Origin: Gnetum montanum
Taxonomy: Eukaryota; Plantae; Gnetophyta
Direction of reading: 5' to 3'
NCBI GenBank assembly: GCA_015680685.1
Contig: MNCI01001687.1
Location: forward strand, 222,255 to 286,254
Length of the DNA stretch: 64,000 nt
Position numbers and translations under genes: made by a program. The notes under the pieces were generated by a model. That model did not search any database. It saw only the letters and a program-made list of their open reading frames with translations, and was not told where the DNA came from. Shown in pieces: positions 27,229-49,900 of this stretch (position 1 is its first letter; each line of letters starts with the position of its first letter).

Positions 27229-28271
27229 CTAGCACACTTCAGAGGTTTCTCATGCATGCAGCAGGATACAATGCAAGTTTCTCACTTCAAACCGGTGGCT
27301 ACACTACGCTACGCTCTATAGCGTAGCACAACATAACAAAATGCTACGCTACAAAGAATGGAAAAATGTGGTGAGCAGTTACGTGAAATCAATGCACCTC
27401 ACCTAATTACACCATTTCTCTGACAATGTAATTATGATGCAGTAGGTTTGTAATTATGCCATGGAAGGCTCGCCCAATAGTCATGTAGGCACATGCAACA
27501 TAGACAAGTCAACATAGGCCCAAGGCACGTGGCGTTCAAACCATATCTTTGACGTGCTTGGGCCATATAAATACCCCAATGAGCAATGCTTACGGGGTTT
27601 GATTCTCCCTTTTAGGGCTTTTGGACTTCTGGCACTCGAGCTCTCTTTTTTACACTTTCAATTTCGATTTTCAAAGTAGTCTAGTCGGCTAAGGATTTTG
27701 TTGGCATACAAGTAAGCATGATAGCACCGTAACCTCGAGCATTGTAAGCTTCCTCATTCGACATTGTAAATAGTTAGCATTCTTAGTTGGCATTCTATTA
27801 TGCTCTTTCCCACCACCTTGGTAGCACTTCACATTATTAATGCTTGAGTCCATGTTCAAGCAGATAGTCATCTCGCTCTATATGTCTTGGTTACCCTCAG
27901 GATCTCTGCACTTCCTAGCACTGTGCAACCAATTGTATCCATCTTGATAGAGTGAAGTTGTAGCTCCGAAGTAGTGCATTTTTCTAACTGCACTTTACTT
28001 TGTCACTTGCTTATTGTTGCATTTTACACTATTTTCTACCTCTTTTACATTCAAGCATTGCTTTACACTATCAATTTTTGTTTTTCAAATCACATATTGC
28101 AAAAGGTTATATAGACACTGACTAAGTCCCTATCTGATTGACCAGACCATTCAAGGTGCTCTGTTTCTATCCCATCTAGCATGACCCTCCCACAGAAATG
28201 GGGTCAAGACTATCTATGACCAAAGACTAGTCGACATTCTTTTCCAGTGGCTAACTTTTTTGGTCACTACA
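27229..28271 (+). repeat. 5' LTR of E4 (5'-truncated)
   Basis: Ends ...CACTACA before the PBS. TATA (CATATAAATA) at ~27564. The U5 part is similar to the E6 LTR. Confidence 0.8.
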
Positions 28272-28278
28272 GTTTCTC

Positions 28279-28296
28279 TGGTACTAGAAGGAGGGC
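28279..28296 (+). promoter_or_regulatory. Primer binding site of E4, tRNA-Asn type
   Basis: TGGTACTAGAAGGAGGGC, a decayed form of TGGCGCTAGAAGGAGGG, which is complementary to the 3' end of plant tRNA-Asn(GUU) (...CCCUCCUUCUAGCGCCA). Confidence 0.85.
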
Positions 28297-28369
28297 CTTT
28301 GGTGCCCTTTCTATGTGTCATGGTAGTCCTGTAAGCCTTCTACACCATGATACGCATTAGTGTAAATTT

Positions 28370-28640
28370 GACACCCTTTTGCAGTTGTTTACACGTTGTG
28401 CAGTGCAGATCGGTCACCTCGATGGTTCCTCGAGAGCCCTAGATGACATAAAGCCTCTAGTTGCCAGCTGACTTGCCTATCTTATGGTAGTCTTGCATGC
28501 GTTCTGTATCCTTTCGTGCACTAGCATAAACGTGACACTTATTTGCGGTTGTTTACCCATCATGTGGTACTAGTCGGTTGCCTCAATGGCTCCTTGGGAG
28601 CACTACAAGACATAAAGCCTCTTTTTGATTACTTGCCAAA
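28370..28640 (+). repeat. 5' UTR tandem repeat of E4 (2 units of ~163 bp)
   Basis: tgacac...gcggttgtttac...cggt..cctc.atgg..cct...gacataaagcctct repeated at ~28370 and ~28533. Confidence 0.75.
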
Positions 28641-28727
28641 TTATTGCTCTTTCCATTCGCAAAACTATTTATCTTTCTAGTTTCCTTGCTTTTTTTCATG
28701 TTTGCAAAACTATCTAGCTTAGTAACA

Positions 28728-31700
28728 ATGACTTCTGCAACTACTGCTACTAACACCTTCAATGTTGAGGTTCCCATCACGGTTCAAGGCACCCTTGGTG
28801 CTGAAGAACTATTGAACCCAATGCTGGAAACACGACAATCCCTTAGGATCCAAAATCACAGACCTAAGGGCTTGGCCTAGCAACACGAGCACTATAACTT
28901 CCTCTGTGCAAAGGTTCAAGAAAACTTTCATTTGGATGTACATGAATTCGAGGGCAAATGTAGCTTTGAGTTCACTTATTGCGACGGGAAGGAGTTTGTT
29001 CCCACTACCAGCACTTCCATACCTTTCACAAAGATAAACCAAAGGCTTCTAGACCAACTAATCTAGTTGGCTAGGCTTTGGTAGTAGTAGGACACAACAT
29101 CGAACCAGGATGATGCTTTTCAGGGCAGACAGGAGGAACTTGATTCCCAATCCGATGAGGGAGGTTTAACCAACCCTGTTCCTACCCCTCCTACCCAGTC
29201 CTTCTAGGCCAACCTGTTGCCTTTCACTGCTCCCTTTTTCATCATGCCTACGCTCCTGTAGCCTGCAACTACAACCACAATGGGTAGCCATGTCACCTTC
29301 CCAGTGTATCAATGCCCTTATTCCCCTATTTCATTTCTAGCGACTATGCCTTCACAAACTATTCATCAATCCACTCCCATAGCACATCTCATACTAATCA
29401 CAGCTACCCTATTGCATGTTCACAATATACCTACTTCGTAGTCATATGCAACTCTCATTTTTATTCCTACGTTAACATCTATTCCATCCACCACAGCATG
29501 CCTGGGCCCATCCACATGGTGGACCCCATTCACTTTTTTGCCTATTTCACAACCTTCGTAGATGTCTCATTATGTTCACCCTCAGACCTACCAAACCCCG
29601 AAAATGGTATAACCTAACATGAGGCTATGGTCTATTCCACCGATGACACAAGCGGTCTATTTGACAGCTCAAACCATGGTTGCTGCTCCAAGAGCACCAC
29701 CTGTTGGGTGGTGGATAATGCAAGCAGCACCACTCGTGTGGGCTACGCCAATGGTACCAGTAATGGGTCACACTGCCACCCCCGCCACTCCATAGGTGGG
29801 TCCTGCCTCAGGAGTTCCCCAACTGCCTACACCATCGTAGGGTTTGGATCAAGCATTCTAGCTTATCCAGAGCCTCACTGAGGAAATGAAACACCTCAAG
29901 GATATTAGGGCTAACACGGTACAAGTCATGGACTTTTACTAGGATTACCCCATCAGCTTTGCAATCCCTGCTCTAACGTTACCCCTAGGGATGTCTCTCC
30001 CACACTTCACGAAGTACGATGGGGAGGGGGATCCCAATAGACATCTAGTTACCCTTAGGTCTGAGTCTCTTCTATTGCAATAATGGTGACACATGATTAT
30101 TGGTGTCTTTGGCATGTCCTTAGATGGGAGAGCCTTAGATTGGTATTGTGCTGCCATGCTTGTCCATTTCAACATTAGAAGAGCTTCTGACCTAGTTTGT
30201 GGCGTGCTTCAAGTACAACTTGAGGCCAGAGATCACATTGGATGAGTTGATGAGCATAAAATAGGAGCCTCTGGAACTAGTCCAGAAGTTCATCTAGCAA
30301 TAGAGTGTGACCCTTAATGAAATCCCCGAGCCCATCGTGGAGGCTCACTTGTTGGCCATCTTTAAGGATGCAGTGAATGACTTTATCAAGTCTAAACTGT
30401 ACTACCTTTCCCCTCGCACTCTTAGTCAAGCCTTTGCTTAGACTAAGAGTATACAAGATGTGGCCGAGGCAAGCAAACACCTGGCCTACATCGCTTACAA
30501 AAACACATTCACAAAGAATGACAAGGGTAAGGCCCCAACAACCAAAGTGGCCATTGTGGAAACTAAGGCCAAGCCCAAACCTAGTAACAATGGTAACAAG
30601 GGCAACAAGAAACTAGCTGTACCCGCAGCTAACCCCATGCCCAAGCAGGGAACATGTCACAACCTCCATCACCTACACCTGAGACATCTGTGCAACCCAA
30701 AATGAACTTTGAGGGTAAAGATTGCTCAAAGTACACCGCACTGCGTCGAAAGCCTTTAGAACTTCTGAAGCAACTACTAGCAGTGGGGCACATTCAACAC
30801 AAGTAAATGTTGAAAGAAGCTAGCAGGAGACATTAATGCTACTGCGAGCTCCTTAGGAACCGCTCCTTGGATCTGCCCAATGAGCCCCCAATTCCTAAGG
30901 GTTTTCAGCTAGAAAAGTTTTGTGACAACCACCAATAGTGTGGTCACAACATGGATTACTGTCTGGCATTGTAGGATGACATCTAGAGGTTGATCAACTA
31001 GGGAAAACTGGTGTTGGATGAAACCAACCCAGTACATCCCGAAAACCAATCTATTCATGTCTACATAGACCCCCTCAATGCCAATAATTCCGATTACATC
31101 AACAACACCATTAGCATTGACAGTGATCCTAGGCCAACCCAATAGCCATTCATGGTCCCTGTGCCTCAACGTAGTGCACCAGCACCATGAGTGACTAGTC
31201 AAAGCTTGTAACAACTATTCATCCTGAGAGTTCCACCATGGGCATCCATCTCCATGCCACCTATTAGTGAAACCGTGCTACTTCACCTGCTAACACCGTT
31301 AGCTCCTTTCATCATTAGGGGGCCAACTCCTTCGACAACCCCTGCCCTGTAAAAAATAGCTGAATAACCTTCTCATCCTAAAAAATGGGAAGTGCGTTTT
31401 GTGGTTGAGGCATTGAAGGGGAATACCACCCAAGGCATTCTGAAGCCTACGTCTTTGGCCCCTACACCTGCACCTTTATCACTAAAGATGAATGTTGCTG
31501 TAACCATGCAGTCTATGCCACCATACCAAAAAGGGTCTAAACCTAGATTTGAAGTTTCCCCTGCTTGGGAAATTCATCTTCTAGGATGAATCAAAGAGGA
31601 GGGAAGCTTCAAATAGGGGGTTGGCCAAGACCTTTTGGATGCCCTCGCTCAGGAAAAGTAGGCTTTAAAATAGAAAAACACTACACTTAGCCTATATGAC

Positions 31701-32531
31701 CTGATCATGACATCTTTCCCCCACCATGAGGCTCTGATCCACATGTTGATAGTGATTCTGGTCAATGAAAACATGCTAATAGAAGAGGAAGTGATCCACT
31801 CAGTCATGCTTCCCTCTGCACCCATAAATCCTGAGCCATCTCAATTGACTTTCAGAGATGATGCCATTAGGGAGGATCTAGAGAGGGGTCAGCTGACCAT
31901 GGCATCCCTTTTCATCATAATTCAGTTTAGCCAACATCATATTCGAAGGGTACACATTGATGATCGGGCTGCCACAAATGTCATCCCTTTCCCTATTGTG
32001 GTCAAGCTGGGCTTGGTCAACCAGATCAAGCCCACAACAACATCGTGCCTAAGGTCATTCAATGGGGCATGCATCTTGGTGAAAGGCACAGTCTACATAG
32101 ACTTTGTAGTAGGGGACCAGTTCCCCATAAGCACAACATTCATCGTGGTCTAGGAAATGCCCGGGGTTAACCTAATCTTGGGGAGATCATGGTTAGAAAA
32201 ACTTAGGGTTGTCTCCTCACCCATACATCAGGAAATCCACCTACCATACATGGGCAGGGAGGTGGTGATCCATGGTGAAAAAATAGCAGCATAAGCTATT
32301 AGTAACATAGACAGGGAGTAGGGTTTAGAGGTCATAACCTCTAAGAATGAAGCGCCTGCTCATGCGCACATTAACCACTCAGCGGGAGAGTCAGCCCAAC
32401 ATGCTGGTCTCCAAAATGAAAGCGTATGGGTTGAGTTGTCCTTCCAAGCGGGGGACAATGATGTGAATGAGATCCCTAGAAAAACACCTCAGCCTTACAT
32501 TCCACTCAACCCATGATGGTTCAAGAAGTAG
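28728..32531 (+). pseudogene. gag: Degenerate gag-protease ORF of E4, with a Pro/Thr-rich N-terminal extension
   Basis: ATG at 28728. Capsid motifs LPHFTKYDGEGDP..HL and GRALDWY, knuckle FCDNHQ*CGHNMDYC, protease VHIDDRAATNVIP...NLILGRSWL. Stop TAG at 32529-32531 with no RT following. Confidence 0.9.
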
Positions 32532-33099: not shown

Positions 33100-34081
33100 G
33101 AATCCCATGCTGTCATGGATTGTCTTTGTTTGCATCATCTTCACCTTTCATTTTTGCATCATTTCCTTTTGTATCACCTTCCCCTACATTTTCCTCTGCT
33201 GATTCTTCATTCCTTCCATCCACGGGCCCTGTGCCCTCATCTGGAGCCTGCATCATAGGGGTGAAGCGATCAACTAGGAAAACAAACGTAAACTACAATA
33301 GAGCATAAGCATTAACACGGTAGAAAGCAACTAACTTGAGAAGGGCCTACATCCGTCTCAAAGGGTATCTAGTCTAAACTAAGCCCGAGGCGATGCCAGA
33401 CCTCCTCTATTGTGATGTCCACCCAACACCTATTGCTTGGTTCAACATCCGTAGTAGCTCTCTCCCTTTCAGCAATTGTCCACCTTGGTGGTCCTAGAGA
33501 AAGGAGACGGTTGTGGTCTCTCCTATGGGAAGGTCCACTTTCAGGTTAGGAGATTTTGTAACCTTTACCTACTTCTTAAACTTAGCATAGGCCTTAGAAG
33601 GATCAATAGCATTTATGAATGCTTCATACATAAATGCCTCCACAGTAGTGTCCCTATATAGTTTACGATGGGTGGAATTTTCCTATTTATACATCTGTTT
33701 ATGGTTTCTCTGGGACTGCCCCCATTCGTAAACCTTGGCATTGAATTCTTTCAAATCTTGACACTTCTGGGCTAGCAAGTCTATCTGCATCTACTATTCT
33801 ATTATTTCTTGGGTGGATTCAATGTTTTGACGAATGACTATCCAAAACCTGGAATAGTTTATTACAACAATGCACCAGTCCTCATTATTAGTGTCGCAGG
33901 CTATGGGGAACTCGTTTCTTGACTTGAGATCCTCCACCTCGATAATTAAGTTGGCCTCCCTTTGCTCAGCTCTTTGGACCTATTTCAACAGGTGCTCGTT
34001 GACATGCTGATACTCCCATAAGGAGTGTACCAAGTGCAAAACACATTTGCAAGCCTCGTTGTACGTGTGACAAGAGACCTC
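33100..34081 (-). pseudogene. 3' exons (coiled coil, acidic tail) of the E4 antisense gene
   Basis: Minus strand reads VSCHTYNEACKCVLHLVHSLWEYQH...EVEDLKSR and EEVWHRLGLSLD, homologous to E5 exon 7. The frame continues into 46973+ once E5 and one TSD copy are removed. Confidence 0.8.
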
Positions 34082-35215
34082 AGTACTACCTGAAATTGTC
34101 GATCACCGACTGGAAGGAAACAGAGATCGTGGGATTGAAGGACGTGCACAGAAGACCCTGCCTTCACCTGAGGGCAAACTCAAATGCACGAAGGTAGAGC
34201 ACCTTGGGTGGTCGGCACGCAGATCAGATAAGGACTTACCCGCACATATGCCGAAGTGCTATACGCTGGGTTATGCGTAAACAGCGTAAACGGGCGTAAA
34301 CGACGTCACAGATATAACAGGGCGTAAACGTAAACGAGCGTAAACAGAAAACATGCAAGAAATTAATGTAAACTATAAACAATGGTATTACAGAGTTCGA
34401 ATACAGTGCACCAGTCTAACACAGTTGTGATGAACACAAGGCATACGAAAAGCCCTGGTGGATGCAGGGATGACTCGGTGGATTTGCACAATAGGTGGAG
34501 CGTAGAGACTGTGTACATGGCGTACAGGGCTTTCTAGCGTAAGAGGGTTTTAGCTCTGGTGTGCAGCATAAATGTCTCTGGTCTACTCTAATATTTTTTT
34601 GCCAACCGTCCTAGGTCAAGTGGAGAAGTGGGGTTTTTATACCAGTTGTTACGCTAGACTCGGGTTAGGGGACACATGGCATGTTGACCGGGTGCATACA
34701 ATTTAGAAATATACATCATATTACATCTCTTGGGCATACACGCTAGATCAAGCCAGCGTACATGCTGGGCATATACGCTGGATGTGCTAGGCGTGTGAAC
34801 TTGGGTGGAGATGCCATGGATGCTAGGCGTGCACGCTGACAATGGCTGGGCATATACGCTAACGGCCGCCGACTTGCTTCAATTCTTGCTCTTCGGTGTT
34901 GTCTCCATTCTATCATCGAGACTTCATTGTTGGGCGTGTGCATTTGTGGTGCCGAGCGTACAGACAAGGCGTGTACATTGGGCGCGTAAGTCGGATGTCT
35001 GTTGGGCGTATACACTGGGAATGTCAGGCGTATACACTAGGAGTATATGCTGTTGATGCTGAGCGTATACGCTGGTACTGCACTTAGTGAAAAGTAAGCC
35101 TTTTGATTCCAGAAGTTGCAATGTGCGACGCCAGATGTAGTCGTGGCCGTTTGTGGGTCACAGGGACCTGCTTCTTGCTGGGGAAGCACTAAACTCAAAA
35201 TTTTATGGTGTTTCA
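34082..35215 (-). repeat. 3' LTR of E5 (1134 bp)
   Basis: Collinear with 45788-46972. Starts TGAAACACC on the minus strand at 35215, after PPT AAAGAGGCGCCAA. Rich in GCGTATACGC. Confidence 0.95.
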
Positions 35216-35844
35216 TTGGCGCCTCTTTGTTGACGCTTGGAGGAATCGACCTGAGAAACCTTGACAAAGAAGTGCAAAACACCACAAGCAACATGATATA
35301 AACTTTGTCCTTTGCCACTGGACTAGATGTCATCGCACCGTGTTTAGTAGTACATGAGATCGAAAAGGGAAATTTGTAGCTGATAGGAGAAGAGAGATTA
35401 TGGGGAGTGGTGACTCCCCAAGAAACTATGCTGGGAGATGGGGTGCTCGAGTGTGCGGCATGCTGGTCCTTGTCAATAGCCATTGTTGAGCAGACTCGGA
35501 GTTCAGACATGCGATGCGTGTCCTTTGGTGGGACAAGGCTCCTGGTTAGTGTTCAAGAGTACTTGTTGGCAAGACCAAAGCTATGGAGAGTTGTGTTACA
35601 TGCTTTGGAGGAACAGGGCCCATGTTTAATGTTTAGAGGGACCTGTTGGCGGAGAGCCAGAGCCATGCAACTATATGCTTCTCGATCGTTTCTTAGACAT
35701 GAGTACTTGGTTTTGAGACAACTGCCCTCCCGCCTGGGGCTTATATGGGAAGTTCTAGGAGTCTCGGTTTTTTTTTTTTGCTTTGAAAATAAGGAAAAAG
35801 GCGAAAAAAGCAAAAAGGCATAACGGCTGCGTCAGTGTCAGCGG

Positions 35845-35865
35845 AACGTTATATAAAGGGGGGGT
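35845..35865 (+). promoter_or_regulatory. Putative TATA box of the E5 antisense gene
   Basis: TTATATAAAGGGGGGG about 215 bp upstream of the exon-1 ATG (36064). A similar CATAAATAGGG lies upstream of the E4 copy (~50595-50605, minus strand). Confidence 0.5.
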
Positions 35866-36063
35866 GTCCATTTGCTTCTTACTTTGAAAGTGACAAAGCG
35901 TAAGCGACAGCGTAAAACTGTGAAAGTGTAAGCATGAACTAAGCGTAAATTTCCTCGTGAGCATAGACGCCGAAGAGTAACCCCAGTGTAGACGCGTGGC
36001 ATTAAACCCCAGCATAGACGTGGAGTGCAAACTTGTAGGCGTTCATAGCGTAATCAGGCCGAG

Positions 36064-39000
36064 ATGGGCAAGGGCAAAGAAGTGGAGGGCCAGGGGAGGA
36101 AGGGTCCCGACTTGACCTTCGCGGAGGAGACGGAGGCTATGCTGCAGGGCCTGCCCATGCCAAGGATACCATCCTGGCCCATGACATCGCACAGGTAGGC
36201 TCTGATCTTTGCATTTGATTATTTCTATGCTTTGTCCTATATAGCATAGATAGTCTCGGCGTATACGCCGAGCGTAAGGGTTTTTAGGCACATGGGGTTT
36301 TGCGGCGTATATGCCAAGTGTTACTTTAAGCGTAAAGTATTGTCGGGGTAAACATTTTCCCTGTACTAGCATATCAACGTAAGCCACGACGTCGTGAGTT
36401 TTTTTTTGTGCTGTCTTGCCAGCATGATTTGTTTGTTTTATTAGTGTAAACTCTATACTGTGACGATGTATATGCTGAGGGTTGATTCGGTGTGTACGCT
36501 ATTAGTTTATAGCTGTCTGTCAGTGTAAAGTTGTTTTTTCTATTTCTGGCATAAACTTGTTTATTCTATGCTGGCGTAGACTGTTTACGCTTAAATCGCG
36601 CTGCAGCGTATACGCTAAGGGTTTCGTCGGCGTATACGCTAAGGGTTTCGTTGGCGTATATGCTAAGGGTTGGACAGTTCATTTTCAGCATATAGGCTGA
36701 GCCAAGCAGCATATACGCTCAGTGTACAACGTATACGCTGAGTTTGGATTGCGTTTTTGCGCCAAGTGTGAACGGTTTCACCGGCGTATACGTTGGTCTA
36801 TGTGGCGTATACGCTGAATGCAAATAGTTAGTAAAATTTTTCCAGATTTTTAAGTGTCGATTTATGATGTAAACTTTCTCTTTTTTCAGGCTAATCTGTC
36901 ATGGCATCATGATTGTTTATAGGGACAACAAACGCTTCCTCATCATTGTCGAACTTGTCGGGGTATTAACATGGGTTGGCCCCGTTGAGGAAGGCGAGGT
37001 TCCCCTGGATCTGACCGTGGATGATAACAGGGTTTGGTTCAGGGGAGGCACATGTGGATTTCTGTCCTTCCTATTGGACAATTTCAAGGTGGGTATCTGG
37101 TCCAACTTTGACGAGGTAACTGCAGGAAGCGTGCTTGAGGAGATGCTGCTGGGGGCTACAGAGGATGTCATGGTTTTTATACAGGACATTAATGAGGGAC
37201 CTCTGGTTAACGAAGATGGTACTACCCGCGGGCCTTGGTCTACATGCCAATTAATGCGCGTGTGGGCACTATTGCTGTGAGGGTTGGATTATCTCAACAA
37301 TACGTTGTTCATAGTTGCCCATGCACATACATTATTCCAGAACCCTCCCGACAGAGTGTATCGAGTGGCCAGGTAGGAATGTTTAAGCTTACTGTTTCCT
37401 TTCGCTATTTAGCATTTGCTTCTTGTTTTGACCCATATTTTCTTACAGGCCGAAGACCAACCCGGATGGGACACTTATTGAAGATGAAGGATTAGCCCTT
37501 GCACGCACTGCTCTAGAAGCATTTATGACAGGCCCCACCCTTCGTGGGACCGTACTAAGTTAAACGAAGGGTTCGATGATCCACTTTCACAAGAAGTTCT
37601 CCAGAGCATTTGCGATGTGCAAGGCTCGTGGGTGGCTTCATGAAGACTAGACTGACAATGGGCCAGTCTTCCCTCGTGACTTTGGCAGCACATCTAGATC
37701 TTCCACTAACGGTAAATGATAACATTTCTTAGATGTGTTAGTGGGTTTATCCAATTGTCTTGATTTACGTTGATACGATCATTTTAAATTGCTTTTACAG
37801 TTGATGTACCTTCTGGTGAGGATCCGGTGACCACTGGGCGAATCGAGACAACTTTGTCGATGAAGTTCAGAGGGGTGGCTAAGGCCCAGAAGTGGTTGCG
37901 TAATCGCGCTCCTCCATCCCTTGCTCGTTGCCTGGATGACGCTGGCCTCATGGAGCTTTTTATGACTCCGAGTCCTGATGTTTCCATTGGGGAGATGATT
38001 GGGATAGTAGACTCCCTCAATGAGTCTACCTCATACTACAGCACCCTGATCAAGGGTGTGAAGGTAGTTTTCCATTTGTCGCCCAAGTTCTTTTCAAACC
38101 TATTTGGCGTGCCGGCAGATGGCTTGAATGTAGTACTAGACAGAGCTCATAAGGAGCTCCAGATGATTCAGGAATTGGAAGATTGGCTAGGCGTGACCAA
38201 GGGTGCGAAGGGATTCCTGATGCAGGGGAAGGAAAAATTTGTAGAAGTGAACGAACTATATCCCCTATTTCGAGCACAGGTATTTCCCAAAACTCTTTCC
38301 CAGGTGAGGTGCCTTGGGGTTGAGGCTGTTTGTGTCATGCGAACTGTTTTGGAAACAGGCATGTGATATAACTGGGCATGATTTTTGTTGTCAGGTATGC
38401 ACAAGGAGATAGTGCGGTTGTGCTCAAATGTCAAGGCGCAATCCCATTTCACCTTCGCAATCTTTGCCGGTTATCTTCGCCGTTTTGCCGAGTTCTTGGT
38501 GGTTCGCGTAGACAAAAAGTTTGTTCTGCGGGATCGGGGTCAACTATCCCACCCGTGGATCAATCACCTGTATGATACAGCCAAATCCCAAGATGCACCT
38601 GAAGGCATTGATGAATCCGCTTCTATTACCATAAGGGGATCATTTGGCGGTTCAATCCACACACGTGATAGTTTGGGGTTGGAGCCAGATGAGGTACCCT
38701 ACACTGCTAGAAGGGCAGAACGGGTCATCAAGGAAACCGTTGGCCAAGCTAAAGCAAAGCTAAAGAGGCCTGAGCGCCTAGCTGAGGAAGTCTCCAGCGT
38801 GAACCAGCCACGCGTGAAGCGGATACGCTTCAAGATGCCTGGTAGGCGAACCTCGTCCGTTTATCGTTTTCGTCTTGTTTATAAGTTTTACCCCGATCGC
38901 TTACATGTCTTTGATATTTTCTTTTGGCCCAACTCTAAAATAGTGAGGAAGCAGGCTCTAGAGACTATTACTAAGGAGGAGGAGACCAATATAGAGAAAA

Positions 39001-40521
39001 ACAATGAGGAGGAACATACAGAGAAGAGCCAGGGCGGAGAGACGGAGGAGTTAAAGGAGAAAACCACGGTAACTGAGCCATTGGACAACCAGGGCAGTGT
39101 CGATCAAGTGTTCCGTAGGTTTCTTTAGGGAGACTTGGATCTGGGAGACCCCCCAAAAGGTGACAAGGATCATGGTATGTTTTTCCCTTTATCTCATTTC
39201 AATTTCTCTTGTCAGTCATCATTTTTGTGGTATATTATCTTTTTATGTTTTTCTTTTTTACCTTGTCCAGATGAAGGTAGCGAGACTAGGATGGTGCATT
39301 TGGATGTACCAATGAAGATGGTTCCCCCAGAGAGAACCGCTGAGGCTAGTTCATCGCATACACGTGAGCCATTTACTTGGTCAAAAATGCTGAGCAAAAT
39401 GGATTTTGTGGCTGGACTCGCAGAAGAAGTCGTTAAAGGGATCTAGGAGGCCCACCCTGACATAGGTATACATCGTTTAAAGGTTTGGAACTTGACATCC
39501 TGGTTATATTGTCCTAACATTTGTATTTTTTGTGTGGGAAGGTACTAAATTGAGATGGGATCCATCTGAAAGCATTAGCATAGACAGTTTAACCACACTT
39601 TTCCCAAAAGTGGAACAGGTGTCAAGGCCTGTTTACGATGGAGTTGTGGAAGGCTTTGTGCACAGTGCTAAATCGTTATGGACCTGTAGGCATTCCATTG
39701 AGCAATTGTGGCTACAGATTTAAGCAAAAGAAAGGGAAGTCTCTGAGTTGTCAGTGGAACGTGACGATTTGAAGGCCCGGTACGAGTTCGCCGCTGCTAG
39801 GCAAAGCGGTGATCGCTCTTGGCGCACGTCCGAGGTCACATATAGAAGATATTGGAATTTATTGAATCGTAATGCATCGCTAACTCAGAGAATGGCAGAG
39901 CGCAAAGCCCAAATTGATCTCCTAAACCTTAAATGTCAAGATTGGAAAGCCTTTGCTTCCAAGGTTTTTAAATGGGGTCAGGATGAGAAAAATCACAAAC
40001 ATTATTACAAGAAGTCGCTAAAAGAGGTGTTTATTGAAAAGTGGCAACTACAGATGCTTGTAGAGGGTTTGGGTTTGCGTTCTTCTTTCGATACTTTTGC
40101 TCATAATACAACTGTGGAAATGGAGTCGCCTATGAGGGTGATTACAACTGCTTCTGGGGAAGTGTCGGTTGGTGAATTCCCTCTAAAACATCCTACCTGG
40201 TCAGCTGTCGACAAAGGAAAAACTTTGGCATACGTTGACTTAGGCCTGGATGGGACGGACTAGGCCAGCGTTTCAGAAGAAGAAATACTTCATCGGCTGG
40301 AGTTTGGCTTAGGGGGATCTCTTATGGTAAGCATCTCGTCCTTATGAAATCTGCTGAATAGTGTTTAAAACTTTGACATCCACTTATTCTTATGTTGGTT
40401 GTTTTCTTTGGTATTTCCAAGATGAAGGTGGCGATGATGATCAAGAAGCTCGCCCCAGTGGAGTAGGGGCCTCTGATGCTGGTGGATCCAAAGGGGACGA
40501 TCCTCCCGTCCTGGATGCTTA
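36064..40521 (+). pseudogene. Antisense 8-exon gene of E5: FCP1/NIF-like pseudophosphatase + plant-mobile-domain-like region + acidic linker + coiled coil (~1,070 aa)
   Basis: Exons 36064-36194, 36890-37372, 37449-37711, 37801-38841, 38944-39174, 39271-39465, 39542-40326 and 40422-~40521. All introns are GT-AG, and exons 1-7 join in frame. Nine in-frame stops (37278, 37561, 37648, 38364, 38379, 39126, 39444, 39721, 40261) can each be explained by one transition from CAA/CAG/CGA/TGG. The exon 8 frame is ambiguous. Confidence 0.85.
36590..36820. repeat. Array of GCGTATACGCT palindromic motifs in intron 1 of the E5 antisense gene
   Basis: Near-tandem 24-bp units GGCGTATACGCTAAGGGTTTCGTC at 36606-36670, plus dispersed copies up to 36815. 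Confidence 0.85.
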
Positions 40522-41063
40522 GGCTCTCTTTTTTTTTTGACTCAGACCCAGACTGATACGGGAATTGTAATTTGTGACAATTTTGAGATGACGAAAACAG
40601 TTGATACTTGTAATTGTACAACATTGCATGTAAGAAAATTTTTGTTGATTTTGACTTTAATTGTAAACACAACGCAGCAGTAAAAAGATGTTTTGGCTTT
40701 TTTTCTGTTTTGTTTTAAATGTAAAGCGGAGATGTGATTGTAAATTCTGAACAAAAAGGAGAACACAGTATGCACGCATGAACAAGTTTAAGGCCATTTC
40801 GGGCCCCCCAGTCGTAAATGAAGAATATTCCGAATGACACGGGTGGATATTTTTTGTTAACCAATCATTGCTGATCATGGCTAGTTTTACGTCTTTGCAG
40901 AAATGATAGTTTAACGTCATTTCGAACAAGGAGGGTAGTTTAGTAATAATTTTTTTTTGTTTTTCAATTTATCGTAGTTTAGTGTCATTTCGGATGGATG
41001 GTATTTTAACGTTGTTTCAGACATGTTATAGTTTAACGTCGTTTTAGACTAGGAGCATTGATA

Positions 41064-44000
41064 TTATTGTAAAATTTTTTTTATTTTCTTTTTTTTAATG
41101 TTAGGCGATATGTCAACCGGGATGATTCTGTATTCAGCGTCCCCTTCACTGATTACGTTAAATGGTAATTCAGCCCAAGGTACGTCTGATGGAATGGCTT
41201 CCGTGTCAGTATTTTTAGATGTTTTGATAATTGGTAGGGGTTCTATGTTATTTTCCATTTGAGACGTTGTATGTACAGAGTCAGATGCAGGTGTTTCTAT
41301 TTTAGGAGGCTCTTGTTCTATGTTCGAAGGTTTACTACTTACCAGTGGGTGCGTGTTTTTATCATTTAGTTTAGGCTCTTCAAGTTCCACTTCTGATCCT
41401 TGGTCCATGTTCACGTGTGATGAGATAATAGGCGTAGCGGCTTCCCCGTGTATGATGATTTCACCACCTTCATAAGGCAGGTGGATCTCCTGCTGTACTG
41501 GGGAGGAGACAGCTCTTAGTTGGGCCAACCAGGGTCTTCCTAATATTAGGTTGAACCCTGGCATCTCATCGACTACTAGGAATTCGGCAGATGTAGGGAA
41601 CTGATCTCCTGCTATGAAATCTAAAGTTATTGTGTCTTTTACCATTACGCGTGACCCGCTGAACGATTTTAAACATGTAGTAGCAGTTGGTTTGATTAAT
41701 TCAGTAAGCCCCAATTGTTCAACGATGGGATATGGCACAACATTTGTTGTGGCTCCGTCGTCTACGTGGACCCTATGTATCTTAAACTAGTTAATACGTA
41801 TCGTTATGAACATGGGGGCTATTGTTATTTCCCCTATTTTTCATCCACCCTAATGTTGTTGTCATGGAAGCTCAAGGGCTTAGGAGTGGTCCCGTGAGAT
41901 GAGTACATTACTGTATGGATGATAGGTTCGTTCGGGGGCAAGTCCTCGCTTACCGGGATCGATGTTAACATGCGTACTAGGGCTTCTCGATGTGTTTGGG
42001 ATGTTAGCACCAAGTCATACAAGCTCAACGAAGTGTTCTTTTTCTTCAATGCTTGGGTGACTTGTGTCAAGGCCGTTGCTAAATCTTTACTATTTGGAGC
42101 ATTTTTATCAATGATAACTGGGTCCATTGGGCCCAACAGTTTTATTTCATGTTTTGTTGGTTCGTCATTTTTGTTCGAAGATGTCGTTTTAAGAAGTTCA
42201 TGTTTTTCAAAGGATTCGCCTTCATTTCCCACGTCTGATTGGTTGTTAGGCGACGACATAGGCACAGAGTTAAGTGGAATGGGCTTAGGTGGCCCTAGAG
42301 CTAACCGTTGGCATTCCTTCTCCACACGTTCACATGTAAGCCTATCTACTAGACGTTCTCATGTGTGGCATGGAGGTGGGACTGGTCTTGGAGCCTCGGG
42401 CTGCCCTGGGATTCGCACCACATATGGAGCTGGGCGGGGTCGCGGTTGTGCCATTGGATGTAACTAGTTAGAAGGCTGGCTAGGGATCCTAATGACGTAG
42501 GGGCTAGGCTGGCCTGGCGCTCGTGAGATGGAGGTTTGGTAATCATTAGGAGTTTCGGGTATCCTAATGATATACGGAGTTGATTTTGGTGGAGGTTGGA
42601 CCTTCGCCATTGCGACCGCGGGTGGTACCTGAACTACGAAAGGGGTAGGCCGAGTATGAGGGGTTGATGCATTCAAGGGGACGACGGGAGGGACATGTAC
42701 TACATACGGTTTGTCCCGTGTCATGGCGTTAGGCGTGGGTGTGGGCACAACGGGGGGAATCTGAACTACGAATGGCCTATTGGGTGTTTTCTTGTTTATA
42801 CTGGGGATAGAAAGTGCTAATGATGGTTGCTTCAGAACCATCATCAAGGTAGATTGTACTAATGACGTACGACACCTCGCTGGTGTTCAGGGGGTCTTTG
42901 TACACCCCGATAGCTTGATTCTGTGGTTGGATCGGGTTGGCCTTGTCAAAAGTGATTTGGCCTTCATCGATCATCCACTGGATGTCCTGTTTCAAGGTGA
43001 AATAGTAGTCTGTACCGTGTCCGTTTCATTGATGGTAGTCACAAAAGTGATCCATCCTGAAGCCTTTGGGTACGGGAGGCTCATCCGGCATTGCTAAACT
43101 TGGGTTCTAAACAAGTTGGCAGGACCGGTCATGTCTCTGGATGGCCACGGGGGACAACTGTTTATGTTTCATCAGCCTAGCCTTCATGAGTTGATCGAAG
43201 AGCTAGGAAGGCTTCATTGGCAGAGGCGTGTATTGCGAGGGTACTTTCCTCTTGAAGTTTCGCGTGCGGTTCGTTGTTGGATTTTGCGATGATGATGATT
43301 CTGACGCAACTGTGGGAGTTGGTTTATTGTAGTTAGTAGGGGTTGCGGGTGGTTTGTTTTGTTGTTGTGCCCCTGCTATCGCCGCTATAGTCACCTTAGC
43401 CTTATCTTTATCTTTTTTGGTGTGTTGATTCTTAAAGCCTAGGTATGCAGGGTCATGGTTGTTTTGGGCCGCTTGTTCTATGTTTTTAATTTGTACAAAT
43501 TCTTGGTTAAGATCACGTGTGTTAAGGTAATACAGCTTGGATTGAAAGAAATCGTTAATGGCTCCTTTTAGAATAGTGAGCAGGTAGGTCTGGGAGATTG
43601 GCTCATGCAGTTCATTCAGAGTGGCGCTCCACCTCTGAATAAATTTCTGTACAGGTTCAAGCGGTGCTTGCTTAACCTGTATGAGGCTTTCTAGGGTGGC
43701 CTCGGGTTTCAAGTTGTACTTGAACCGAGTCACGAACTAGTGTAATAAGTCTTCCAAGGAGAAGATGGAATTCCTTGGCAGGGCCCGATACCAATCAAGT
43801 GCCCTCCCTGAGAGGGACATGGGGAACACTCGGAGAATGGAGTGGGGCCAAGCCTGGAGCAGCGCGCATTCTAGTCTAAATGTTACCAAGTATGCATTGG
43901 GATCTGTCTCCTCGTTGTATTTGGTTAGTGTTGGTAAGGAAACACCTTTGGATAAGGTTAATGGTGGGACTGATGAGCCGATGGGGTCATCCTGGTAGAA

Positions 44001-45164
44001 ATCCACTACCTTCAGTTCCCCATCGACAGTTATTTTGAGGAGTTTTACCTCATCAGCTAATTCTTGCATCAATTTCTTGGCATCCGCCTAATCTTGGGCA
44101 CTTGGTAACATGGCAGCTGGAGGTTTTGCTATATTATATGAGTTAGACTATTGGATGGTGGGTTGAAAGGCCGAAAGTTGTGCAGCCAGGGGTTGCACTT
44201 ATGGCACGTGATAGGGGAAAGGTTGTGGTTGCTGTGGCGGTGGCTGTACTGGAGGAATGTTGGCTGGTTGCACCATAGGGGGTGGGATGTTATAGTGAGA
44301 AGGTTGATGTTGCTGTGGTTGAGTGCCCATCGTTACCCATTGTGTAGCTACATTTTGTGGAGGGATCCTCTGTTGGGTTACGGCGGTAGAAGGGGCTGTA
44401 TGCATTTGGATGTGCGGGATGTAGTGAGCGGATGTGGATGTCGGTATTACGTGTGGCATTCCTATCACTTGGGATGGGAGTGTCACTCCCACGCTATCAT
44501 GACGGAGCAGTGCTTGTGAAGATGGGCTAGCTGCTGCATCGGGGACGATGGCGAGAGGGAGTGTGCTGAATTGCGTATCAGTTGGAGGTGGCACATGAGC
44601 AAACGAGGATGTATGCGATGGAGGCATTTGTGTGTGAGTTAATCTGAGGGGTTGGATGGGTAGGATCTCCCCTGTACTAGGGTGAAAAATGGGGTTAACC
44701 TGTGCTTGCGGGCTCAGAGTGTGGTAAGAATCCTCTTGTTCAGATTGAGCGGCAAATTTGTCCTCTTCCTCTAGTTGGGACTCTAGTGCGGGCTGATCTA
44801 AGGAGTGTCTCCTTTGCAGGAGGAGCCGTGTGACGAGCTCCGAATACTGCTCTGGAATAGGGATGATGTCATACGGCAAGGGGATGAACTCGCGTCCCCC
44901 TCTGTAAAAGAGTTTGAACTGCCTCTTTACCTTCAGTTCGGCTCGGTCTACAGCCAGGCCAACTTGTATCTTGATGCATATAAATTTATACTGATCCTGA
45001 GTTATGATGTCGAAGGATGGGTCTCTCGCTTGCAACCTTAGGGACCGGCGGGGCCCCGTGGTGGGTTGTACTCCCGGGTGTTGCGTGGCAGGCTGTTGGA
45101 TAGCCATGGTGTCCACGATGTCGGTTATTTGAGCTATTGCAATGGTGGTGTTCACGGGGTTCAT
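41064..45164 (-). pseudogene. gag: gag-protease ORF of E5 with in-frame stops
   Basis: ORF pieces 45164-44199 (Pro/Gln-rich N-terminus), 44072-43737 (LPTLTKYNEETDPNAYL..GRALDWY) and 43733-43203, knuckle CDYHQ*NGH, and protease VHVDDGATTNVVPYP...NLILGRPWL ending KKKKIKKILQ*. Confidence 0.92.
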
Positions 45165-45764
45165 GATGAATCGTTATGGGTATGACACGGGGTAGAGGAG
45201 CGAAATTAGTGTACTTAGTACAGCGTAAACTAAGGGACAAAGTGCAGCATATACGCTAGGTGGTGTATACAGTTTCAGCGTAACACAGTACAACGTAAAC
45301 GGAGTACAACGTAAACGGAGTACAACATGAACAGGATAGAGCATAAAACAGAGTAGGGCGTAAATAAAGTACGGCGTAAAACAAGACAGCGTAAACAAGG
45401 CTCAGCGTAAAAATAGGCAAGGCATAAAAAGAATACAACATAAACGATGCTCAGCGTAAGATAAGGGATAGTGTAAATACTGAACAGCGTACACGCTGGG
45501 CAGTTCGTAGGATGAATTTTTAGGCTAGCTTGCGTAGACGCTAGGCTTTCTGTGGACAGTCCACATGAAGTTGGCAGCGTATATGCTGAAAGACTTGTAA
45601 AGTTTAACACAGGGCAGCGAAAACACTGAAGAGCGTAGACATTGGTAGGCGTGTAGGCAAGGTTTCCAGACGAGGCTGGGGTTTCAGTAGAAAATAGCGT
45701 GGTTGACGGCGTATACGCTCATCAGTGTAGACGCGGAGACGTTTGCAAGCGAGTTTTTTAGGAG

Positions 45765-45782
45765 GCCCTCCTTCTAGCTCCA
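45765..45782 (-). promoter_or_regulatory. Primer binding site of E5, tRNA-Asn type
   Basis: Minus strand TGGAGCTAGAAGGAGGGC, 5 nt inside the 5' LTR end. Confidence 0.9.
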
Positions 45783-45787
45783 ATTTC

Positions 45788-46972
45788 TATACTGCCTAAA
45801 ATCGTCGGTCACCGGCTGGAAGGAAATAGAGACCGTGGAATCGCAGGATGCGCATAGAAGACCCTACCTTCCCCTGAGGGCAAACTGGAATATATGAAGG
45901 TAGAGCACCTTGGGTGGTCCGCACGCGGATTAGACAAGGATTTACCCACACGTATGCCGAAGTGCTATACGTTGGGTTATGCGTAAACAGCGTAAACGGG
46001 CGTAAACGGCATCACAGATATAACAGGGCGTAAACGTAAATGAGCGTAAATAGAAAACATGTAAGAAATTAACGTAAACTGTAAAAAATGGTATTACAGA
46101 GTCAAAATATAGTGCACAGGTCTAACACAGTTGTGATGAACACAAGATGAACGAAAAGCCCCGGTGGATGCAGGGATGACTCAGCGGATTTACACAGTAG
46201 GCGGAGCGTAGAGACTGTGTACACAGCGTACAGGGCTTTCCAGAGTAAGAGGGTTTCAACTCTGGTGCGCAGCGTAAATTTCTCTGGTCTGCTATGATAT
46301 TTTTTTCCAACCGTCCTAGGTCAAGTGGAGAAGTGGGGTTTTTATACCAGTTGTTACGCTAGACTCGGGTTAGGGGACACGTGCCACGTTGACCGGGTGC
46401 ATAAAATTTACAAATATACATCATATTACATCTGCTGGGCGTATACGTGGGGTGTATACGCTACATCAGGCTGGCGTACATGTTGGGCATATACACTGGA
46501 CATGCTGGGCATGTGAACTTGGGTGGAGATGCAATGGATGCTGGGCGTACACGCCAACAATGGCTGGGCGTATACGCCAGGCGTATACACTGACGGCCGC
46601 CGACTTGCTTCAATTCTTGCTCTTCGATGTTGTCTCGATTTTGTCATCCAGACTTCATCGTCGGGCGTGTGCATTTGTGGTGCCGAGCATACAGACGAGG
46701 TGTGTACATTGGGCGTGTAAGTCGGATGTCTGCTGGGCGTATACGCTAGGAATGTCGGGCGTATACGCTGGGCATATACGCTGTTGATGCTGGGCATATA
46801 CGCTGGGCGTATACGCTGGGCGTATACGCTGGTACTGCACTTAGCGAAACTAAGACAAGTATTAGTAGGAAGGTGCAATGTGCGATGCTAGATGTAGCCG
46901 TGGCCGTTTGTGGGTCGCAGGGACCTGCTTCTTGCTAGGGAAGCACTAAACTCGAAATTTTGTGGTGTTTCA
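45788..46972 (-). repeat. 5' LTR of E5 (1185 bp)
   Basis: Starts TGAAACACCAC at 46972 (minus strand). It is longer than the 3' LTR mainly because of extra GGCGTATACGCTG units at ~46790-46832. TATA-like TATAAAAA at ~46338-46346. Confidence 0.95.
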
Positions 46973-49900
46973 ACCTCAGTCACTTCAAGTAGGAATTTAG
47001 GAATGACATCGACTTTCAAAGGCCGTGCCAGGTCCCATTTGAGTCGAGAAGCTGCCATGACACAAAGAGCATAGCAATCGCGTTAGCATAGAAAGATTAT
47101 CAAACTCAAGAAACTCTAGCATAACAACATGAGAACATCTAATACTACTACTTACCCATGTCAAGGTTTGCTTGCTGGAGGTGGTTGATCATGTCATCAA
47201 CATTTTTCTACAAAAACATAAACTTGTTAGGGATCTTGGCCCAGGACTCCACACGAATCAAAGAGGGTCCTGCAGCATCAGTAATAGCGCCTGTTACATA
47301 ACTAAACATATCAGCAATGGCCGAAATGGACTAAGACAAGGCAAACACATTGCCCAACTCACCAGCATCTAATTGCGGTCTCCCTTCTTGCTGATGCAAG
47401 ATGATGGTGGTAACCTTGGTAGAGGTCCTTGCCAAGTCTGTACAAACCTCTTCCTCATGTGCTAGTGCCTTTCTTTTTAGGAGACCAACATATTTTTTAT
47501 TCAAAGGAGGCTCCTCTTCATTAGTAGGAGGATTCTCCCTATTGACAAGAGCTCCCGCCTTAGCAATAGTGGTTCTTCCCTTCTCGATCGAGGCCCTTTC
47601 TTCCAAGATTGAGGTCTCCATGTCTTTATTCGTCACCCCTGTCTTAGACCAACACCTCTTCATCACCTTCTTCTTCCACTTCTTCTTCCTTTGCTAGCAA
47701 AGAAACATATTTGCATTAGTTCAAAATAAGTTAGCTTAAAGAAAGCACTACACTAGGCCACACCACCTAGCATAGCATAGCATAGCAAGCAATAACAAAG
47801 TAAGCATTAGAAAAAAGCGTTTACCAATGGGGGTTGCATCCTCTGTAGTTTAAGTTACAATCTCTGCCCCTCCTCTTCCTCCATATAAAGGGTTTCCTTA
47901 GGTGGGTGAGGCCTCTTTCATTGCAATATTTTGGGCAAAGTCTCAGCTATGAGACATTCCCCCCACGACACACTACTTGCTATAGCATGGGGTGTCTCTC
48001 CTATGCTATCCTGGCCATGAACATTGCGAGCCACCTAATCCTTAGTCATCATAGAGAATGACTCCCCAATTATTTCTAGGGAATCTTAGGCTCAAATGGT
48101 CCTGAGGATCTAGTGAATCCACATTCTAGAAATCTGGTTGCGAATTTGCATGGCCCAGGCCCCATTCTTGTGAACCACTAGGAATTCCATGAACTGCTTT
48201 AGATAGGCTACATAAAAGGCATAGTGTATGTTGGAATGGAACTCTAATTTCTGACAGAGTCCCAAGATTTCAGCCTACAAGCCTTTACATAGAAAGCTAG
48301 CCCAGTTGTAATGGCCCCCTCTTCCATGACCTCACGCATTATCTAGGCTTGATTAATCCATAGGACCTTCCCTTGGGTAAGCAGCTAGGGGAAAGCACAA
48401 GCATGGAAGACAGGGTAGATCTCCTTGGTGGGCCCATCTTTAAGCTTCTCCATGGAGAGCCCTTTTCACTCCTTAGCAATCCCTAGGCACTCCTAAATGT
48501 CCTTCATCTGAAGGATCAGCTCCTTCTTACCATTTGATCCTATGAGGATGCCTTCGGTAGGAACACTGAATAGATCAACGAATAGCTAGTCATTCATTTC
48601 AATGACCACCCACACACCTTGTATTTGCAGAGCAAAGCATCCTATCTTTTTGGAAAAGGAGTTGACCAAGGAAAGCATCTTGGTGGTAGAAACGCTCAGA
48701 TTTGGGGCCAGGAATAGATCCATAAGCCTAGCCTTTTGGATGTTCTAGACCAAGGAGTTTGAAGCTGCACAGTTTATCTAGCGTTGGCTCAATTCTACTT
48801 CGCCATATTTGAAGTATATGTTTGATCCCTGTGTTTCGGCAGTTACCACCATCACCTCCTAGGGCTTCTTTTCCCATGCAACAATTTCACAAAAATGTTT
48901 AGCGTAAAAATGTAGAAAATACAAAGATTGTAAAGGAACTTAAGCATGCGACACTTATTGTTTGGCCTACCAGGTCTGTACAGTAACAGAAATGGTGGGA
49001 GTTCAACTAGAACTTGTTCAACTGTGACCATTTTAAAGGGTTCTATCCACTCCTCATCCATCCAATCCTTCCCCTTGCACTGATCATAGGGAATATGATA
49101 TAGGCCTGGGTAGGTATGGTATTTAGCCCCACATTGACTGATCACACCCACCCATAGGTTCTTAGCAGAATAGAACTCCTGTAGGGCTATCTGTTCTATA
49201 GTCAGTAGACCTGGTAGGTCATGAACCCCATCCTTGTCGATGAGGAACCTGATAAAAAACACATACTGTTAGCATTAGGCCAATATGGCTAGCATCACAC
49301 AAACACAGCAAAACAAGGATACAAAACTCACCTGCTAGCACAGTAGACAGTTCCCTATGGGTTCTGGAAGCACATCGCTATATAACACATGATGAATAAT
49401 GTGTTGTAATGGTGGTAGAAGTTGTAATCAGGCATGTCCTAGATCTAAGAAAAATTCCTTAACCCTACTAGGCACTGGTTGGATCCTTCTCCCTTCCTAC
49501 TCATGATTGTCCCATCAGTTAGAAACCTCAGAATGCCCTGACTTGCCCCAAGAAAAATGGCTTCTATTATGCCAGCCACCTCCTCCTCCTCTAGGGATGA
49601 CCAAATGATCACACTAAAGTGGTCAAGGAGGAATTATAAGAAGTCCTATGCCCCTTTCCTGAACCAAACCCACCATTCTCCCATACGTATCTAGGGAGGA
49701 GGAGCATTGGCCATAGTTTTGCTCACATGACACAAGATCCCTCTAATTTCTAAAACAATTAGGATTGGCCATAGCCCCATCCTACACAACAAAACCAGTA
49801 AGTGTTAGCATCATGTCTAAGTGAAATACACATGCAACATAGCAACACCTAACAGTTCATGTATATAGCATAGCATAACCCTCTTCCCGTGCATAGCGTA

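Follow-up and report, generated by a model that had tools for sequence, protein, structure and literature searches.

A non-autonomous LTR retrotransposon of Gnetum montanum that is no longer functional carries, on the strand opposite its own genes, the decayed copy of an eight-exon accessory gene that begins with what looks like a catalytically dead CTD-phosphatase (NIF/FCP1) domain. The gene is shared by at least three very divergent element lineages in the window that we analyzed, a 64,000-nucleotide stretch of contig MNCI01001687.1 (GenBank assembly GCA_015680685.1, positions 222,255 to 286,254 of the forward strand), and relatives of it are transcribed and spliced. We found no paper describing this gene.

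Results

Gene structure and its host element

The gene lies antisense inside an element that we refer to as E5 (34082-46972, minus strand), which has two LTRs that are 84.6% identical, a 5-bp target-site duplication, ORF1, gag, and protease but no RT or integrase. Two further copies of the gene, copy X and copy Z, sit in the same window, and E5 is inserted into exon 7 of copy X. The features of these elements, in window coordinates, are as follows.

34077-34081, target-site duplication ACCTC, left copy (right copy at 46973-46977)
34082-35215, minus strand, E5 3′ LTR
35197-35285, minus strand, PPT and LTR-start region, conserved with copy X (55887-55950) and the AT-rich family (25669-25755)
35850-35856, plus strand, the only TATA-like box in the 850 bp upstream of exon 1, 214 bp before the ATG; candidate promoter of the antisense gene (inferred)
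36064-36194, plus strand, exon 1 (ATG at 36064; ends in phase 2)
36195-36889, plus strand, intron 1, 695 nt, GT-AG, with arrays of a GCGTATACGC-type motif
36890-37372, plus strand, exon 2, NIF/FCP1-like domain without catalytic motifs; in-frame stop at 37278
37449-37711, plus strand, exon 3; in-frame stops at 37561 and 37648
37801-38841, plus strand, exon 4, central domain conserved in all three copies, family unknown; in-frame stops at 38364 and 38379
38944-39174, plus strand, exon 5, Glu/Lys-rich low-complexity region, lineage-variable; in-frame stop at 39126
39271-39465, plus strand, exon 6; in-frame stop at 39444
39542-40326, plus strand, exon 7, helical, coiled-coil-like region, the best conserved part and the most covered by RNA reads; in-frame stops at 39721 and 40261
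40422-40521, plus strand, exon 8, acidic tail
41067-41786, minus strand, E5 protease region (58% amino acid identity to copy X, 52% to copy Y), with no RT/RH/INT following
43206-44087, minus strand, E5 gag
44202-45173, minus strand, E5 ORF1-like frame upstream of gag (Pro/Gln-rich, no Pfam hit)
45788-46972, minus strand, E5 5′ LTR
46978-50519, minus strand, copy X of the gene, exon 1 to the start of exon 7, heavily decayed
33116-34081, minus strand, copy X, rest of exon 7 and exon 8
12700-16108, minus strand, copy Z of the gene (AT-rich family), decayed, with at least one frameshift
28695-32333, plus strand, copy X element, ORF1-gag-protease, upstream of its antisense gene
51335-54253, plus strand, copy X element, RT, aRH (RVT_3), and integrase, downstream of its antisense gene

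Confirming the observation made in a sequence-only reading of this DNA, exons 1 to 7 (36064-40326) join into a single frame of 3,129 nt, or 1,043 codons, with matching phases at every junction and no frameshift. All seven introns of the gene are GT-AG, with six of 76 to 102 nt and intron 1 of 695 nt, and the introns are U-rich as in plants (GC 0.377, T 0.408), whereas the exons are not (GC 0.487, T 0.249). The frame contains nine in-frame stops, whereas the other five frames of the same exons hold 33 to 70 and 2,000 shuffles gave 55.4 ± 6.9 with a minimum of 33. Exon 8 is one base out of register in the E5 copy, but RNA reads of relatives show the in-frame version. The residue motifs that the sequence-only reading had picked out in the translated exons, including LMRVW in exon 2 and IVDSL in exon 4, are all present. 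Its remark that only transition-type stops interrupt the frame says little by itself, because every stop codon is one transition from a sense codon. However, an outgroup shows a sense codon at three of the nine sites (copy X at 37561 and 37648, and all reads at 39721).

Divergent copies of the gene in the window

Copies X and Z were detected by tblastn (E values down to 1e-20 and 6e-21), and the copies share 26 to 43% amino acid identity without DNA similarity, with exon 7 at 37 to 43% identity between E5 and copy X. Between E5 and X, gag is 50 to 55% identical, protease 58%, and ORF1 25%. Introns 1, 2, and 3 keep the same position and phase in E5 and X, and intron 2 splits an Arg codon between AG and G in both. 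Intron 2 is at about the same place in Z. All three copies in the window are broken, so no intact ORF was seen, but these findings support a real multiexon gene that is carried by the lineage rather than by one copy.

The autonomous copy X element runs ORF1-gag-protease on the plus strand, then the gene on the minus strand, and then RT-aRH-integrase on the plus strand. Thus, the gene sits between protease and RT in an Ogre-like split, which is not the position between pol and the 3′ LTR of the Retand and Grande antisense ORFs with which the sequence-only reading had compared it. The gene abuts the 3′ LTR in E5 only because E5 lacks RT and integrase. In copy X, we detected RVT_1 at 51734-51979, RVT_3 at 52876-53121 (E = 0.0024 for an 82-amino-acid piece, below the cutoff), Integrase_H2C2 at 53581-53775 (E = 1e-5), and rve at 53779-53991. 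An extra archaeal-type RNase H in pol, between RT/RH and INT in angiosperm clades, is a character of the Tat lineage of Ty3/gypsy elements (PMC6317226), and copy X has this character. The element also shares with the Ogre clade an extra ORF upstream of gag (a 324-codon frame in E5 with homologues in X and Y) and the separation of gag-protease from RT-RH-INT. Without a reference RT set, we built no RT tree, and the lack of a PMD hit in ORF1 does not decide Ogre membership either way, since PMD occurs in 57% of Ogre elements and is not universal. The sequence of copy X was too decayed to call a sense-strand splice donor after its protease, and splicing of the sense strand across the gap was not examined.

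Transcription and splicing of relatives

Spliced antisense reads had been proposed beforehand as a test of the gene model. We examined poly(A) RNA reads of the same species, which lie on the gene at mostly under 90% identity. In one run (X4), eight reads break exactly at the exon 7 donor (40326) and continue in exon-8-like sequence that aligns 23/29 to 40422-40450, with shuffles reaching at most 13 against the observed score of 17. Although the libraries are unstranded and only this one junction is documented by reads, the GT-AG polarity puts that transcript on the plus strand. Reads lie in both orientations, and some carry intron sequence. In another run (X1), we considered strand-switch adaptor letters next to 39556 and 40441 as evidence for plus-strand 5′ ends but set them aside because the first site overlaps the adaptor's own 3′ letters. 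A dN/dS near 1 had been named as a result that would count against a maintained protein. We did not estimate dN/dS, but 39 differences between E5 and the transcribed relatives could be scored, and these showed no synonymous excess (10 synonymous and 29 nonsynonymous). These differences are a biased subset that mixes the decay of E5 itself with family divergence.

Domain assignment

We next tested the proposal of the sequence-only reading that exon 2 encodes an FCP1/NIF-like pseudophosphatase domain and exon 4 a domain resembling the plant mobile domain (PMD). Exons were searched piece by piece, without joining the spliced protein or repairing its stops. A Pfam search of 19 pieces of the gene from the three copies gave a single hit, of E5 exon 2 to PF03031 (E = 0.14, residues 39-78 on profile positions 34-73, co-linear over the region around motif II). 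This hit falls below the gathering score (12.3 against 21.8 bits), and the pieces of copies X and Z gave no hit. In contrast, 29 of the 30 nearest ESM Atlas clusters in protein-language-model feature space carry PF03031, with top scores of 0.94, 0.92, and 0.90, with 205 (of 256), 189, and 168 shared features, respectively, and recognition of 3280. The catalytic motifs are absent in all three copies. The position of the DxDx(T/V) motif I reads E-L-V-G-V in E5, E-L-V-D-V in Z, and E-I-R-G-I in X, and the motif IV position after N-T-L is nonacidic in all three, which fits a pseudoenzyme and not an active member. The NIF/FCP1 reading is thus supported by independent but subthreshold evidence and is not proven.

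As for the predicted HAD-like fold, whose absence would have counted against this reading, AlphaFold2 models of the exon 2 and exon 4 pieces made from alignments of three to four rows had mean pLDDT values of only 43.6 and 36.8, respectively. These models were unusable and no fold search was run with them, so they speak neither for nor against the fold. phmmer and profile searches of PDB sequences gave no NIF or HAD hit, with unrelated top hits at E values of 0.18 to 0.78. Word-indexed protein searches with the exon 2 piece, the exon 2 alignment, and the exon 7 piece returned no hit, and two scans of metagenome contigs found no relatives.

The PMD reading of exon 4 was not supported. Pfam gave no PMD (PF10536), Transposase_28 (PF04195), or PF20167 hit at E ≤ 10 for any piece of any copy, and a full HMMER profile search of 1.84 billion protein representatives with the exon 4 alignment gave no hits. 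No PMD cluster was among the 30 nearest Atlas neighbors of exon 4, which gave only a weak DUF1985 lead.

Discussion

Our findings confirm the observation of the sequence-only reading, whereas its interpretation is supported only in part, with the antisense multiexon gene carried by the lineage upheld, the NIF/FCP1-like domain gaining subthreshold support, and the PMD reading not supported. We favor, with good but not full confidence, a model where this is a decayed copy of a lineage-specific accessory gene of an Ogre/Tat-like Ty3/gypsy retrotransposon clade. In functional relatives, the gene is probably transcribed from its own promoter on the strand opposite gag-pol, spliced, and translated into a protein of about 1,050 to 1,080 residues. 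In this model, the protein consists of a short N-terminal exon, a NIF/FCP1-type HAD domain that has lost its catalytic aspartates, a central conserved domain of unknown family, a variable charged linker, a helical, coiled-coil-like region, and an acidic tail. Because the gene is antisense, the sense genomic RNA of the element does not present its introns as introns, and they would therefore pass through reverse transcription and be inherited, an argument that the sequence-only reading had also made and that we consider sound. In copy X, the gene occupies the gap between gag-protease and RT-RH-INT, which in Ogre elements is a sense-strand intron. The dead phosphatase fold most likely serves as a (phospho)peptide-binding module, for example for the RNA polymerase II CTD, so that the protein would regulate transcription or silencing of the element, although no function was assayed. 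The gene structure, its conservation and orientation, and the transcription and splicing of relatives rest on our data, whereas the promoter, the nesting in a sense intron, and the binding function are inferences. The E5 copy itself is dead, with nine stops, a broken exon 8 junction, no RT or integrase, and old LTRs.

Other explanations appear less likely. An ancestral element may have captured once a host gene with introns and a NIF-like domain and carried it along as a passenger that has been decaying since, without a role for the element. NIF-domain genes are ordinary host genes, the nearest Atlas clusters are Streptophyta proteins, and this unlikely possibility would also be consistent with the loss of catalytic residues, the lack of a synonymous excess among the scored read differences, and the broken state of all three copies. 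However, a useless 4.5-kb passenger should not keep its frame, intron positions, and protein similarity while gag has fallen to 50% identity and all DNA similarity is gone. Furthermore, the nonautonomous E5 lost RT and integrase but kept the whole gene, and relatives are still transcribed and spliced. We consider it more doubtful still that the antisense RNA is the working product, for example as a source of double-stranded RNA that tunes expression of the element, with the reading frame secondary. Antisense transcription has been proposed as a regulator of plant LTR elements (PMC7264820), and the reads in both orientations and with intron sequence would be consistent with this idea, but RNA function alone does not explain amino acid conservation without nucleotide conservation, nine stops against about 55 expected, or conserved intron phases. 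Chance open frames and chance GT-AG pairs in decayed repeat DNA, for which nothing speaks beyond the copy being broken, are refuted by the shuffles, the two homologous copies, and the read-confirmed junction.

Antisense accessory ORFs of plant Tat-lineage elements are known, but none has an assigned function or a recognizable domain apart from TRP28. Those of Retand, Grande (gene23), RIRE2, and PvRetro13 (PMC11963269, PMC7264820) are likewise antisense to gag-pol in Tat-lineage Ty3/gypsy elements, probably expressed from their own promoter, and of unknown but presumed regulatory function. However, they lie between pol and the 3′ LTR, are described as continuous ORFs, and mostly carry Transposase_28, whereas the gene described here lies between protease and RT, has seven introns, shows no Transposase_28 hit, and starts with a NIF-like domain. 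Ogre elements share the ORF upstream of gag, the separate gag-PR and RT-RH-INT blocks, and the aRH between RT and INT, but their gap, a partially spliced intron, averages 274 bp (PMC6317226), whereas here it is about 5 kb and holds a whole antisense gene. This arrangement, together with what looks like a dead enzyme fold, gives a concrete hypothesis, binding of phosphopeptides or the Pol II CTD, and the gene is a natural example of introns carried through retrotransposition because they lie antisense. The NIF/FCP1/SCP family includes noncatalytic members such as TIM50.

A more speculative reading, which we consider unlikely but would be of high interest if true, is that a clade of plant Ogre/Tat-like retrotransposons encodes its own spliced antisense regulator inside the sense-strand intron of the element. 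In this view, its catalytically dead CTD-phosphatase fold would dock on RNA polymerase II or another phosphoprotein at the element's own motif arrays and steer sense against antisense transcription or shield the element from host silencing. It would then be a transposon-borne counterpart of host modules that pair a TE-type domain with a phosphatase-like protein. The host PMD proteins MAIN and MAIL1 with the phosphatase-like PP7L, a TE-type domain paired with a phosphatase-like module acting on TE expression, are similar as an idea only. A PMD was not detected here, and PP7L is a PPP-type rather than a HAD/NIF-type protein. Another analogy is the spliced antisense gene HBZ of HTLV-1 (PMC7264820), a protein-coding gene with its own promoter opposite gag-pol that has no sequence relation to the gene described here. 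HBZ starts in the 3′ LTR and has one intron, whereas this gene is internal and has seven.

Structure of a spliced antisense gene in the E5 element

The + strand between 36064 and 40521 contains unusually long stop-poor stretches. By reading the DNA at the boundaries and verifying the arithmetic exon by exon, we resolved these stretches into eight exons:

36064-36194 (+), exon 1
36890-37372 (+), exon 2
37449-37711 (+), exon 3
37801-38841 (+), exon 4
38944-39174 (+), exon 5
39271-39465 (+), exon 6
39542-40326 (+), exon 7
40422-40521 (+), exon 8

All seven introns are GT-AG. Six introns are 76-102 nt, whereas intron 1 is 695 nt, and most acceptors have clear polypyrimidine tracts. Phases agree at every junction of exons 1-7, which total 3,129 nt and correspond to the 1,043 codons counted in the sequence-only reading, with no frameshift and nine in-frame stops. 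In comparison, the other five frames of the same exons carry 33-70 stops, and 2,000 shuffles gave 55.4 +/- 6.9 stops with a minimum of 33. Exon 8 is one base out of register in this copy. Although splicing of the exons and repair of the stops had been suggested as a way to examine the protein, we neither joined the exons nor repaired any stop, and all searches used stop-free pieces. Introns are U-rich (T 0.41, GC 0.38) and exons are not (T 0.25, GC 0.49), as in plant genes. The observation of an eight-exon gene at this locus is upheld.

We also observed dense arrays of a GCGTATACGC-type palindromic motif in intron 1 (36195-36889) and in the LTRs at 34.6-35.1 kb and 46.4-46.9 kb, which give repetitive "AYTPS/VYAQ" frames when translated.

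The gene is antisense to a nonautonomous LTR element

The gene lies inside E5, an LTR element on the minus strand with the following features:

34082-46972 (-), E5
34082-35215 and about 45788-46972, the two LTRs, 84.6% identical
45173-44202 (-), ORF1-like frame
44087-43206 (-), gag
41786-41067 (-), protease region

E5 is flanked by a 5-bp duplication, ACCTC, and contains no RT, RNase H, or integrase. The sequence next to the left LTR matches the PPT region of two other elements in the window, which fixes the orientation of E5. The stretch just inside the 3' LTR (PPT region and first LTR bases) is about 80% identical between E5 (35197-35285, minus strand), the element carrying a second copy of the gene (copy X; 55887-55950, + strand), and an AT-rich family (25669-25755, + strand), even though the rest of these elements shares no DNA similarity. 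The gene is thus antisense to the element, and this copy is old, nonautonomous, and dead.

Two additional divergent copies of the gene

Searches by tblastn and tblastx within the window identified two more copies of the gene:

50519-46978 and 34081-33116 (-), copy X
about 16108-12700 (-), copy Z

E5 has inserted into exon 7 of copy X, and the reading frame continues across the insertion. Identities to E5 are 26-43% at the protein level, with E values down to 1e-20 and 6e-21, whereas blastn found no similarity between these regions. For scale, E5 and copy X share 50-55% identity in gag, 58% in protease, and 25% in ORF1. The accessory protein therefore evolves faster than gag but is clearly held, although selection was not measured and no intact copy was seen. 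Introns 1, 2, and 3 occur at the same place and in the same phase in E5 and copy X, with intron 2 splitting an arginine codon AG|G in both. Copy Z has intron 2 at about the same place. Copies X and Z are more broken than E5, with many stops and frameshifts.

Position of the gene between protease and RT

In copy X, the antisense gene is flanked on the + strand by the two coding blocks of its element:

28695-32333 (+), ORF1-gag-protease, preceding the antisense gene
51335-54253 (+), RT, aRH (RVT_3), and integrase, following the antisense gene

The gene therefore occupies the gap between protease and RT, which is not the pol-3' LTR position of the antisense ORFs of Retand, Grande, or RIRE2 (PMC11963269, PMC7264820). 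This arrangement instead recalls Ogre elements, which have an extra ORF before gag and in which the gag-PR and RT-INT frames are separated by a partially spliced intron of 274 bp on average (PMC6317226). The gap here is about 5 kb, and splicing of the sense RNA across it was not assessed. In E5, the gene abuts the 3' LTR only because RT-INT is missing.

Copy X has a PPT and an apparent 3' LTR start near 55952. However, self-BLAST shows no LTR pair, and no matching 5' LTR was found upstream of its ORF1 (regions 28000-28700 and 55952-58500), so the element may be 5' truncated or rearranged. GC content jumps from 0.36 to 0.45 at about 28 kb.

Relatives of the gene are transcribed and spliced

The sequence-only reading had made its model depend on the presence of spliced antisense reads from intact copies. 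We aligned four RNA runs of the same species at 80% identity or more. A few hundred reads align to the stretch, nearly all at less than 90% identity, indicating that they come from relatives and not from E5. These reads are densest on exon 7. In polyA run X4, eight reads break exactly after 40326, the predicted exon-7 donor, and continue with 30 nucleotides that do not match the intron. These nucleotides align 23/29 to 40422-40450, the predicted start of exon 8, with one extra base between (alignment score of 17, compared to a maximum of 13 in shuffles). The extra base puts exon 8 in the frame of the acidic tail and explains why the E5 junction is off by one. Only this one junction was documented, from a part of the unaligned read ends. 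A GT-AG intron on the + strand also fixes the strand of the transcript.

At 39721, one of the E5 stops, every covering read differs from E5, so that this stop is private to this copy. Other reads carry intron sequence, and thus unspliced or sense-strand RNA is also present. In run X1, we observed a strongly one-sided read direction over 39542-40003 (first mates on the minus strand, up to 68x against under 2x), with 62 molecules beginning at 39938. Because the library type of this run is unclear, we did not infer the strand from it. Strand-switch adaptor sequence abuts 39556 and 40441.

Domain composition of the predicted protein

We next examined whether the protein pieces match the families that had been named as tests of the proposed FCP1/NIF and plant-mobile-domain identities. 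For exon 2, Pfam gave NIF (PF03031) at an E value of 0.14 and 12.3 bits, below the 21.8 cutoff, although the match is co-linear (residues 39-78 on profile positions 34-73). In an ESM-Atlas feature search, 29 of the 30 nearest clusters were NIF, with a top score of 0.94, 205 of 256 shared features, and a recognition of 3280. The best clusters are from Streptophyta. The assignment to a plant rests on the element type, the ESM-Atlas taxa, and the intron style. The motif I and motif IV positions are nonacidic in all three copies. PDB sequence searches and AlphaFold, the latter also proposed beforehand as a check, gave nothing usable, and the fold was not confirmed. Considering these results together, we regard a NIF-derived pseudophosphatase as likely.

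For exon 4, no Pfam family matched, and specifically not PMD, Transposase_28, or PF20167. A profile search of 1.84e9 proteins gave no hit, and no external relatives were retrieved. The ESM-Atlas neighbors are unnamed Streptophyta proteins plus a weak DUF1985 lead, with recognition below the threshold of the method. The PMD-like motifs described in the sequence-only reading are present by eye, but they have no statistical support. Of the remaining exons, exon 5 is a variable charged linker, exon 7 looks helical, and exon 8 is acidic. Overall, the sequence-only interpretation is supported in part, in that the NIF-like identity of exon 2 gained subthreshold support and the PMD identity of exon 4 did not.

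Model for the antisense gene

Our analyses demonstrate a lineage-borne, antisense, multi-intron gene whose relatives are transcribed and spliced. Introns survive retrotransposition only if the genomic RNA does not present them as introns, which holds for an antisense gene, and the seven introns therefore fit the orientation, as the sequence-only reading had argued. Beyond these points, our model is inferred. The gene may have its own promoter, with a single TATA-like box at 35850, 214 bp before the ATG, and it may be nested in a sense-strand intron of the Ogre type. In this view, the protein would use a dead CTD-phosphatase fold as a binding module to influence the transcription or silencing of the element.

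Of the alternatives, a functionless captured host gene appears unlikely, and a function of the RNA alone appears somewhat less likely still. We consider an origin of these frames by chance to be very improbable.

In a literature collection that does not cover all journals, we found no paper describing a NIF/FCP1-like domain or an intron-rich antisense gene between protease and RT in a plant retrotransposon. Antisense accessory genes of Tat-lineage elements are already known, and we place this gene among them as a variant that differs in these respects.

Other retroelement sequences in the window

The window contains three copies of RT/RH/INT from one AT-rich family, at about 70% nucleotide identity:

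1-934, first copy
8357-10422, second copy
21441-24358, third copy

Only the third copy is preceded by a copy of the antisense gene (copy Z). Its gag-protease is missing, and the post-integrase region of the second copy abuts the gene at about 12.3-12.7 kb. An inverted RT-like fragment (56580-56801, minus strand), with 76% nucleotide identity to the RT start of the AT-rich family (21395-21692, + strand), lies inside what should be the 3' LTR region of copy X. A run of five N at 58032-58036 is probably an assembly gap.
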